Below are positions 15,806-19,312 of a stretch of 35,055 nucleotides of DNA, one piece after another. The notes beneath the pieces were generated by a model. That model was not told the origin of the DNA. It worked only from the letters and a program-made list of their open reading frames with translations, and searched no databases. The stretch lies in assembly GCA_943704425.1 (NCBI GenBank), contig CALSCP010000692.1:75977-111031 (forward strand), in the 5' to 3' direction. The DNA is from Ministeria vibrans ATCC 50519. Taxonomy: Eukaryota > Protista > Filasterea. How positions within the stretch are numbered: the first letter of the stretch is position 1; every line of letters starts with the position of its first letter. The translations under genes were made by a program, and so were the position numbers.

Positions 15806-15862
15806 TCTAAAATTCTAAATTTCTAAAATCTAAAATCTAAAATCTAAAATCTAAATTCTAAT
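15806..15862 (+). repeat. Tandem TCTAAA(A/T) repeat, ~8 units, just upstream of the RNase MRP RNA
   Basis: tctaaaat tctaaatt tctaaaa x4 tctaaat tctaat. Confidence 0.85.
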
Positions 15863-15890
15863 CAGTTGTATTTCCAAAGACACTGCAAAG

Positions 15891-15958
15891 GTACTGTCTC
15901 ATCAATCCCTACACCACGACTGACCCTCCCCACCCACCCCTCCCCTCCCATCTCATAG
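15891..15958 (+). other. Spliceosomal intron 1 of the RNase MRP RNA gene (68 nt)
   Basis: AAG|GTACTG donor, ACTGAC branch-like site at 15919-24, C/T-rich tract, CATAG| acceptor. Removal joins P1(5')-AG-P2(5') as in canonical MRP RNA. Confidence 0.8.
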
Positions 15959-16014
15959 GACTGTAAGTCGGAGCTACAAACGAAGCGGAGGAAGGGAAAC
16001 CTTTCGGTTGCTTG

Positions 16015-16325
16015 GTACGTCGTCTTGGCTCGCTGCGGATTTGTGGGGGGGGGATGCGGAAGAAACTGCCTTAAACAGCGCACATTGCACGTCAAAGGCG
16101 AAAAGAAAAAAAAGAAAAGAAAAAAAAAGAAGAAAAGGTCGTTTGCACATGCGGTTGGGTGTGCACGCGGTGAATGCTTGGGGTGCTGCCATCAGAGCGA
16201 CACGGTCCAGCTCCGCAGATGCACAGCATGCTTCGATTGCGCCTCTTCCGTGCTGCAGTGGCGTTCTTTGTCGTTTCCGACTTTTGACATTTTCGCTCTC
16301 TCTCTCTCTTCTCTCTCCTCTGTAG
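16015..16325 (+). other. Spliceosomal intron 2 of the RNase MRP RNA gene (311 nt)
   Basis: TTG|GTACGT donor, TTGAC branch-like site at ~16284-88, long (CT) tract, TGTAG| acceptor. Removal gives a compact P3 domain. Confidence 0.75.
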
Positions 16326-16735
16326 AATTGCTCTGGGGAAAGTCCCCGGACACTGGGCAGCAAGTGCCACGTGCCGAAGGAGTGCACGTCCACGCGTGGG
16401 CAGCCCCGCTCTGCCGAGTGGAAAGGGTCGCTGCGCCATGACGCCTGCTGAGACACCCCGTGCCCTGTGCAGGGGTTGCAGCACGGCTGAGCCGAGCGAC
16501 CCGCGTGCGCCAGCGTGATCGTCCAAACACAGTGATACAGTCAACGGGGGCACGGCAATATGCGGCGGGAGAGCGGCCCTCGGGTCGTTCCCCACGATGC
16601 GCTGTGCTCTGGTCAACACAACGGGGCTCACTCTTGCATTGGTGTCAATCGGAAGTACAACTCACCAAAAAAAAAAAAATAGAGAAAAAGAATAGAATAG
16701 ATTGTACAACGCAGAAAGGGAAGGGAAGGGGGGCA

Positions 16736-19312
16736 TTAGAGGAGACAGCGACGGAAGACGAAGCGATGAGTGTCGTCGGTAGCGGAGGGGGGCCACTTGA
16801 GCTTGCGGTCCTGAGGGTGCTGATCAGGGCCAATCGGGTATTCTGTTTGAGGGTGTGGTTGTATTAGTATGGAAGTGTGTGCGCTGAATGCGTTTTGCGC
16901 GTGTGTGCGAACCTTTTCCTTCGCGCAATTCGAATAGTTTGTATGAGGTGTAGTCTTCGTGTCGAATGTTGAACCGTCGACACACCATTTCACTGTGCAC
17001 AAGAAACTTGTGTGAGAAAAAGAAACACATACACACACACACACACAAGCAGAGCCTCTTACATTGCTTCTGTGGTTGTCGTTGGATTGCGAATGGGAAA
17101 TGTCTTGAAGACACGTCCAAAGGGATCACCGGGAAAGTAGACGCGCAAAAAGGACTGCATTTCGGAGATGGAGGGCATGCGACGCATCTGCAAGGGCTCG
17201 CTGGGAGTAGTAGTGGCAGTGGCAGTGGTCGTCGAGGTAGAGTCCAGCGGCGCCTTGTATGTCTTAAGGACTTGTACTGCACTGCTGAACACAGTTAGGA
17301 AATACCCTCCTTCGCCTGTCAGAAGTTTAGGCTCGAGCAGTCCTATTTTCAAAGTGTGAGTATTTTTTCTCTGTGTGTCTGTGTGCAGGCATACCCCAAA
17401 GAAGCTCGGCCTCAACTTCGCAGGAGGCCATGCCACTGAGGGCAAGCACATAGATAAAGATAGGAAGGAAGTCATCTGCGCCGAGTACAATGCGCTTGCC
17501 CTGCGCCTGCAGACGCTCCACTATGCGATGCACTGCCGCCACTGAGCTCAGCATGAACTCCAGTTTTTGCAGTGGCAGTGTTGCCTTGGCCATGTTGTGC
17601 AGACATACGACGGCCGGAGACCAATCGGAGTGCGCTAGACGCGGATTGACGCCCATCTCAGTTTGCGAGCGCATCGCAACGGCGCGCATATTGACACTGA
17701 GAGGCGTCAGAGGCTCACTATTGCCCTCCTCCGCTGCACTGCGGTTGCTTTGCAGCGTCCGAGCATTCACCTCCTCCTCCATGCGACGGTATAGCAGCGT
17801 GCGCAGTGGCTTGACCACCAGCCGCTGCAACACCACCTCCTGGATCGCATCGACATTCACTTCCACCATACCATTTGCACTCCCCTCACTGCCCCCCGCC
17901 ACTGTCCCATCCTCCTGTCCTGCTCCTTCATCCTCCCCACATTCTTCACGCAATCGCGCTGTCTCGCGCGCCACAAGACGGTTGACCGGCTCTTGCTGGT
18001 GCTTGCACAAAAAGTGCTTCATTCCATCAATAAACTGCCGCACATTACTTGCCAGCATTGTACCCGACTCAGTGCTCTCGCGCGTGCACACAATAAAGTT
18101 GTCAATGGTGCGCCCTTCCGACGTGTGTTTGCTTGAGCAGGCCTTCATGAGCATCGCTGTGACTAGTTCGTTGATAGAGCGGTGTTCGCGTCGCTGTCGG
18201 CCACCGATGCGTCGCATGAAGGGCCGAATCTTGTTCTTGAGAAGACGAGTACTGCGCGGGAGGGGCGCCGGCACGACGGCCATAGTGGTAGGCGCGGGGG
18301 GTGCTGTGGCGGGTAGTGGGGGTGCAGTGGTGGTTGGAGTGGGAGAAGTTGGAGCGGAGGTTGGATCTGGAGCGGTTGTGCTGTTGTCGTCCGTCGACGC
18401 GTTTGTCGTGGTGCTGTCGCTGGTGGTACTCGCGCGGAGAGTATTGTCAATCTCGTAGGCGGCCACGGTGAAGCTGGAGCGTGCACAGGCCGAGCCGCGC
18501 GAGGGTGAGGAAGAGAGGGTGTCGCTGGAGGGGGACGTGAGGTAGAGGTTTTGTTTGCCGCGCGATTTGGTCGGTGTCTGGCCGACAATGGCTACGCCGC
18601 CGGTGGTACCGTCGCCTGGTGGACGTGGTGGAGGCTTGGGAAGCTTGCTAAAGGCAAGTTTCTTTTTCGGTGAGGAAGAACCGCTCGCGGAGAGGATCGG
18701 AGTTGAGGAGTCGCTCGCGGTCCTGGCGATGCGAGGGGTGCTGTCAAGGGCTTTTGCTGTGGATGTGGGCCGAGAGAGAGCACTCGACTCGACTGAAGCT
18801 TCGCGTGCCATCATGTCAAGGTCTTCGTCGTCGAAAAGCTCGTCGAGTGCCGGGTTTTCTAAGTAGAATCACAATGACGATATTGATTATTGTTATTTTT
18901 ATGGTTTGTTGCAAAGCCAACGGTTGGAAACGACAGGCGCGATAAGCATACCGAACGTTTCAATGTCGTCAGGCGCATCCTGTGCCAACGAACCCACAAG
19001 AGCCGCCATGTTTTTGTCCTTGTCTTGGGCGGAATTGGGCTGGGAAGGGGCGGGGGTCGTGAGCGAGAAGAGCTCGTCAAGGTGCGCTCGCTCCTGCTGC
19101 ACCGCGTGCATTTGTCTGCTGTCGCTGGTGTCGTCGACGTGCGCAACCTGCAACGGGAAGAAGAGCGCGTGTGAGGGAGACCAAAGAGGAGCGTGAAGGG
19201 AGTGTACGTCGTCGAGAAGCTCGTCGAGTTCCGCTGCCATTGTATTGATGGCATCAAAGTAAAGGACTTTGACTCGCGCCTTGGGAGGCAGCGGTGGTGG
19301 AGCGGGGTCCAT
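16736..19312 (-). CDS. RIN-family Rab5 GEF: RIN-homology + VPS9 + Ras-association domains, no SH2 seen
   Basis: RH-like GRTIDNFIVCT..NVRQFIDGMKHFL. VPS9: LPLQKLEFML, LGADDFLPIFIYVL, ELLWG|LLEPKLLTGEGGYFLT. RA: FLRVYFP..KTFPIRNPTTTTEAI|EMVCRRFNI..YKLFELREGK|EYPIGPDQHPQDRKLKW..FVFRR. Confidence 0.85.

Follow-up and report, generated by a model that had tools for sequence, protein, structure and literature searches.

The RNase MRP RNA gene of Ministeria vibrans is most probably divided into three exons by two GT-AG introns

The single RNase MRP RNA gene of the Ministeria vibrans genome most probably lies in three pieces with two U2-type (GT-AG) spliceosomal introns between them, as judged from sequence. 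RNase MRP RNA is an essential, universally conserved ribozyme-type RNA of eukaryotes, which is transcribed from a Pol III gene in animals, and to our knowledge its gene has hitherto been treated as contiguous. The family is a known one (RNase MRP), and the gene layout is not the known one. We found no report of mRNA-type introns inside any MRP RNA gene in the literature searched, an absence that is no proof because many subscription papers, including the main MRP surveys, were beyond reach. An intron-containing MRP RNA of a red alga, mentioned in the initial annotation of this locus, was not found in the same literature. Positions given below refer to the 35,055 nt stretch of DNA that was analyzed (the window), unless another contig is named.

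Layout of the gene and MRP identity of exon 3

In the proposed layout, all parts of the gene are on the + strand. Exon 1 (15879-15890; GACACTGCAAAG), which is 12 nt long as modelled, consists of the 5′ strand of helix P1, GACACTGCAA at 15879-15888, and an AG linker. This exon is very short, and transcription may start further upstream of 15879. Intron 1 (15891-15958, 68 nt) starts with GTACTG and ends with CATAG; between these it has a branch-like CTGAC (15920-15924) and a tract rich in C and T. Exon 2 (15959-16014, 56 nt) carries the 5′ strand of P2, an AG linker, the outer 5′ strand of P3, the internal loop UACAAACG, and an inner P3 hairpin of 12 bp with a GAAA loop (15983-16013). Intron 2 (16015-16325, 311 nt) starts with GTACGT and proceeds through an A/G-rich middle, a TTGAC branch-like site (16284-16288) and a CT-rich tract to its CTGTAG end; it also contains T4 runs at 16282-16285 and 16290-16293. 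Exon 3 (16326-16646, 321 nt) comprises the 3′ loop and strand of P3 (16330-16336), CR-I (16335-16351), P8 (16356-16368), the variable domain 2, CR-IV AGTGA (16531-16535), the 3′ strand of P2 (16536-16542), CR-V (16615-16634) and the 3′ strand of P1 (16634-16646). The 3′ flank (16647-16700) is devoid of an oligo-T terminator and harbors a genomic A13 run at 16668-16680. All motifs and coordinates of the initial annotation were present in the sequence when re-extracted by script.

Exon 3 is MRP RNA. When the whole window was scanned with Rfam at the gathering threshold, one match was obtained, RNase_MRP (RF00030) at 16221-16646 with 52.6 bits, and the RF00030 search of the 29.7 Mb genome returned the MRP locus as its sole match with 58.3 bits (window positions 16172-16640). 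Exon 3 alone (16326-16660 offered) aligned to RF00030 with 65.3 bits as a 5′-truncated match covering model positions 58-266. The curated gathering score of RF00030 is 50 bits, which is exceeded by the contiguous alignments from the window and the genome as well as by exon 3. CR-I (GAAAGUCCCC), P8, CR-IV (AGNNA) and CR-V (in its GGGGCU context) were aligned with high posterior probability; the P8 loop is GCAAG versus the consensus GAGAG.

Exon 3 alone outscored the contiguous alignments by 7-13 bits, and the addition of the last 105-154 nt of intron 2 to exon 3 lowered the MRP score. In the contiguous 52.6-bit alignment, which covers model positions 1-266, about 8 of the 30 pairs of P1-P3 are non-standard. 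The contiguous alignments score lower because P1-P3 borrow the letters of intron 2 and mispair, and the higher score of exon 3 without upstream letters indicates that the MRP 5′ region is not encoded in the letters immediately before 16326. The initial annotation had predicted that a covariance search of genomic DNA would return only a truncated hit; the truncated exon 3 match does score best, but Rfam also gives a spurious full-length alignment at a lower score.

This alignment raises the alternative that the gene is contiguous and unspliced, with an RNA that starts within intron 2 (~16172-16221) and forms imperfect P1-P3 helices from those letters. Such a gene would account for the coverage of model positions 1-266 at 52.6 and 58.3 bits, both above the gathering score. 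However, both values fall short of the 65.3 bits of exon 3 alone, the mismatches among the P1-P3 pairs of the 52.6-bit alignment count against it, and the perfect P1, P2 and P3 strands further upstream with their GT/AG borders would be left unexplained. In addition, the share of locus words that it predicts for its RNA (0.51-0.57) appeared in no sequencing run, as described below. We consider a contiguous gene very improbable.

Exon 2 alone yielded no MRP match in Rfam because it is too short and its pairing partners are missing. In the assembly, exon 3 occurs once, as does a 30-nt stretch of exon 2, and searches with RF00030, exon 2 and exon 3 revealed no contiguous or processed second MRP copy in the 29.7 Mb. 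The locus might instead be a decaying or non-functional copy disrupted by insertions, with the working MRP gene residing in an unassembled part of the genome. The assembly is indeed fragmented into 2860 contigs, and U1 snRNA (RF00003) had no match in the genome at E <= 0.01, where U2, U3, U6, SRP RNA, RNase P RNA and MRP RNA were all found. The U1 gene may lie outside the assembly, be too divergent to match, or be split as well, so that some ncRNA genes may be absent from the assembly or have escaped the search. Against decay, all conserved regions and helices are intact, the insertions sit exactly at helix borders and carry splice signals, the exon words occur in many RNA-type runs, and the assembly holds no second exon 2 or exon 3. 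A defunct copy is accordingly a far less credible explanation than a gene split by introns.

Upstream pairing strands and intron signals

The complementarity and the order of the upstream pieces are exact. P1 is formed by 15879-15888 with 16634-16646 (GACAC/GTGTC and TGCAA/TTGCA), in which all 10 pairs are Watson-Crick and interrupted by a 3-nt bulge. P2 pairs 15959-15965 with 16536-16542 right after CR-IV (GACTGTA/TACAGTC, 7/7 Watson-Crick), and P3 pairs 15968-15974 with 16330-16336 right before CR-I (TCGGAGC/GCTCTGG, 7/7 including two G-U pairs). Following the P3 strand, exon 2 goes on with the UACAAACG loop, corresponding to uACAuACG in the Rfam consensus, and then with the inner P3 stem. 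The P1-P2-P3 order on the 5′ side is satisfied only when exons 1 and 2 provide the 5′ strands, and the order and spacing of P1, AG, P2, the two-base linker, P3 and the loop are those of the Rfam consensus and agree with 18 full-length MRP genes of other eukaryotes retrieved from metagenomes.

How often such strands arise by chance was estimated by scanning both the window and shuffled sequences. The P2 partner followed within 0-4 nt by the P3 partner occurs as a 14/14 composite only once on the two strands of the window, at 15959, while shuffled windows gave 0.35 such composites per 70 kb with G-U pairs allowed. The composite at 15959 is in the correct orientation, 367 nt before exon 3, and the conserved loop motif follows it. 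In a scan restricted to Watson-Crick pairs, 15879 was the sole + strand match for P1 in the window, compared with 1.8 per 35 kb in shuffles, and this match directly precedes AG and then GT. A permissive P1 scan, which allowed G-U pairs, 11 helix ends and 5 bulge sizes, found 283 ten-mers in the window and was uninformative.

Folding energies and sequence profiles were less discriminating. The minimum-energy fold of the three-strand cofold recovered P1 and the inner P3 hairpin, and P2 and P3 were not recovered. The energy gain of cofolding exon 2 with exon 3 was no better than that of random 56-mers (reached by 148 of 250 controls), and the gain of exon 1 was reached by 6 of 250 random 12-mers. 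Cofold energy was rejected as a test of exon pairing, the exon 2 gain being unexceptional. A sequence-only profile built from 16 distinct animal-type 5′ regions did not single out exon 2 in the window with 15814-15861 masked (E = 12, rank 6).

The spacers between the pieces have the appearance of spliceosomal introns. The GT of intron 1 comes directly after the two-base P1/P2 linker and its AG directly before P2, so the placement of its borders is not free. The GT...AG ends of both spacers fall exactly at helix boundaries, and each spacer has a branch-like site of the CTGAC or TTGAC type followed by a long pyrimidine tract and a TAG end. For comparison, about nine HSP70 introns of the M. vibrans genome were located by exon-by-exon family matches. 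These introns start with GTA or GTAC (one with GTACGT), contain CTGAC-, TTGAC- or CTAAT-like motifs and T/C-rich tracts, and end with CAG or TAG; most are 46-114 nt long and one is near 590 nt. The two MRP spacers conform to this pattern. We hold intron 2 to be a real intron with high confidence, and intron 1 is likely to be one as well.

In one alternative, intron 2 is the sole true intron and the mature RNA begins close to or at exon 2, or has some other first exon; the match at 15879-15888 would then be fortuitous, or P1 would be otherwise formed. Exon 1 has just 12 nt, the permissive scan offers 283 ten-mers able to pair with the 3′ end, random 12-mers occasionally reach its cofold gain (the 6 of 250 above), and word shares from sequencing runs are blind to an exon of this length. 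On the other hand, 15879 is the sole Watson-Crick match on the + strand and lies 80 nt upstream of exon 2 with the AG linker and then GT after it, spacer 1 has its AG exactly before P2 together with a CTGAC site and a pyrimidine tract of its own, and in the Rfam model the P1 helix is common to all MRP RNAs. A gene with intron 2 as its only intron is thus improbable, though less so than the other alternatives considered here, and we retain the layout with two introns.

The region from exon 1 to intron 2 gave only chance-level matches in Rfam, with no snoRNA in intron 2, and intron 2 did not fold better than its shuffles. With no Rfam match and no unusual structure, intron 2 gives no sign of a hosted snoRNA.

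Public sequencing runs, polymerase and proposed maturation

We compared the locus with an index of public sequencing runs, in which 20 runs from 11 studies hold part of 15860-16660, represented by 89 sampled words. In fourteen runs from at least 8 studies, 0.38-0.43 of the locus words are present; two of these runs (X6 and X7) are recorded as poly(A) RNA-Seq, most of the fourteen are only guessed to be RNA, and the contigs drop rare forms. Two DNA-like runs hold 0.90-0.95 of the words, and X1-X4, whose kind is not recorded, hold 0.64-0.79 and could be DNA or RNA rich in precursor. The predicted shares are 0.377 for exon 3 alone, 0.411 for exons 2 and 3, 0.429 for exons 2 and 3 extended to 16660, 0.514 for an RNA from 16221, 0.569 for an RNA from 16172, and 0.957 for the unspliced RNA. 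The plateau at 0.38-0.43 therefore fits the exon-only models, no run of this group exceeds the exon-predicted words, and no run shows 0.51-0.57. Since the presence of all exon 3 words requires near-identity across the variable domain, these runs contain the own RNA of M. vibrans and not the conserved core of a relative's RNA. The word shares, from runs that are mostly guessed to be RNA and by a measure blind to junctions and to the 12-nt exon 1, give indirect support to the removal of the introns, not to ligation.

Accordingly, the spacers might be excised and the pieces left unligated, giving two or three RNA fragments joined by the P1, P2 and P3 helices, as in fragmented rRNAs. The word shares would be the same, for they report that exon words are present and intron words absent and are silent on junctions, and all three contacts between exons are helices able to hold the pieces together. 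Yet both spacers carry complete spliceosomal signals at exact positions, a free 12-nt fragment would be unstable, and we found no precedent for such an RNA; we regard fragments of this sort as highly unlikely. For the spliced RNA that we favor, we infer ligation at 15890^15959 and 16014^16326, as we do the identity of the polymerase, the actual termini of the RNA and a regulatory role of the gene, if it has one. One MRP gene with two GT-AG introns, as the initial annotation had proposed, is thus supported by the behavior of the covariance model, the exactly placed unique complementary strands, the intron signals and the word shares of RNA-type runs, with ligation as its conjectural step.

The A13 run at 16668-16680 is located 22 nt past the 3′ helix of MRP RNA. 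If precursors reach it, this run could explain the capture of MRP RNA in the poly(A) libraries X6 and X7. It may belong to the 3′ end region of a convergent VPS9/RIN-like gene (17327-18814, - strand). The antisense ORF of exon 3 had no protein match, and the neighboring VPS9-domain ORF had no record match.

The features of the locus suggest that the MRP RNA gene is transcribed by Pol II. A Pol III gene would be expected to have an oligo-T terminator just after the gene and no internal T runs, and the MRP gene differs on both counts: runs of at least four Ts are absent past 16293, and intron 2 contains two T4 runs. The lack of a T-run terminator, the internal T4 runs and the introns together point to Pol II. 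The RNase P RNA gene of the same genome (L028 1463-1905; G000:C1258) is contiguous with 94.3 bits and has the classic look of a Pol III gene, with a TATA-like GATAAATA ~35 nt upstream and a T14 run ~20 nt past its end. The U6 gene is followed by at least nine consecutive Ts, after which the contig runs into Ns. Both polymerases are known for this RNA, as yeast NME1 is a Pol II transcript and human RMRP is a Pol III gene (PMC7277114). A tandem array of TCTAAAA-type heptamers occupies 15806-15861, which places it 20-70 nt ahead of the proposed start of the MRP RNA at 15879; this array may be a TATA-like promoter element.

RNase P RNA, U2, U3 and SRP RNA have contiguous full-length matches in the genome, and the split MRP gene is therefore exceptional and not one of many split ncRNA genes. 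The sole U6 snRNA match (L029 1425-1563; G000:C648, ~2603-2741) has ~27 extra bases between the ACAGAGA box and GAAGATTAGCATGGCCCC. This 27-nt insertion is without GT...AG ends, and Rfam aligns only model positions 44-105 of U6 with 57 bits. The insertion could be a tiny non-canonical intervening sequence or a tolerated insertion, or the match could be a pseudogene.

In the proposed maturation, a precursor of at least 768 nt would be transcribed, probably by RNA polymerase II. Intron 1 (68 nt) would be excised from between the P1/AG linker and P2, and intron 2 (311 nt) from the 3′ internal loop of the P3 arm, yielding a product of ~389 nt (12 + 56 + 321). Only in this spliced product would the 5′ strands of P1, P2 and P3 be collinear with their partners at the canonical MRP spacing. 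With its strands on either side of intron 2, the outer P3 stem could draw the two splice sites of this intron close to each other. The P3 arm is the binding site of Pop6/Pop7, and it would be complete only after intron 2 is removed or looped out. If this scheme is true, an rRNA-processing enzyme of M. vibrans requires the spliceosome, and probably Pol II, for its maturation, and we speculate that the split MRP gene couples rRNA processing to spliceosome activity.

The layout is of interest to specialists in RNase P/MRP and in intron evolution. As a unicellular relative of animals, M. vibrans would be well suited to the questions of when the polymerase for MRP RNA changed and how readily introns are acquired by stable RNAs. 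Because covariance-model annotation of such a gene produces a marginal and wrongly aligned match, other ncRNA genes split in this way may escape detection or be wrongly annotated in protists with many introns.

Comparison with known systems

We scanned metagenomes with the exact 26-mer spanning CR-I and P8 of the M. vibrans MRP gene, which retrieved 26 JGI contigs (L002-L027), and 20 of them were scanned with Rfam. All 20 are animal-like MRP RNA genes of other eukaryotes. Among them, 18 are contiguous over a full length of 263-299 nt and score 127-153 bits, and the other two are partial with 92 and 64 bits. These genes are closely related to one another and probably derive from the animal hosts of the sampled microbiomes. 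Neither relatives nor RNA contigs of M. vibrans were present among them. The first 24 nt of exon 2 are collinear with contiguous animal-type MRP genes, 15 of the 24 columns being invariant in an alignment with seven genes.

The M. vibrans gene shares CR-I, P8, CR-IV, CR-V and the potential to form P4 with canonical MRP genes (RF00030; human RMRP and yeast NME1; L002-L027), and it has the same order of P1, AG, P2, linker and P3 with a UACANAC loop. In contrast to those contiguous genes, the first 68 nt of the RNA are divided between two upstream exons, and its domain 2 is longer. The separation of the 5′ part and the longer domain 2 explain why the contiguous alignment only just passes the threshold.

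Spliceosomal introns are found in fungal genes for small stable RNAs, namely Schizosaccharomyces pombe U6, Saccharomyces cerevisiae U3 and some U2/U5, and in the U3 genes of yeast the first exon is likewise very short. As proposed for M. vibrans, these are mRNA-type introns in a structural or catalytic ncRNA, whose removal is needed before folding. The present case differs from fungal U6 and U3 in that the RNA belongs to the RNase P/MRP-type ribozyme family, two introns are proposed, and the host is a holozoan protist.

Two other systems link this RNA family or its proteins to splicing. In insects and crustaceans, RNase P RNA is reported to reside within an intron of a host gene transcribed by Pol II (PMC6797745). 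This resembles the M. vibrans gene in that a P/MRP RNA has departed from the usual Pol III mode toward Pol II and splicing-linked processing. There the RNA is the content of an intron and is released, whereas here it would consist of the spliced exons and the introns would be discarded. Similarly, the fission-yeast telomerase RNA TER1 is reported to undergo spliceosome-dependent maturation, in which only the first splicing step is used, generating its 3′ end (PMC13303942). In that account, the spliceosome likewise matures a stable ncRNA that binds P/MRP proteins, by the first step only in TER1, while two complete splicing events are proposed for the MRP RNA of M. vibrans.
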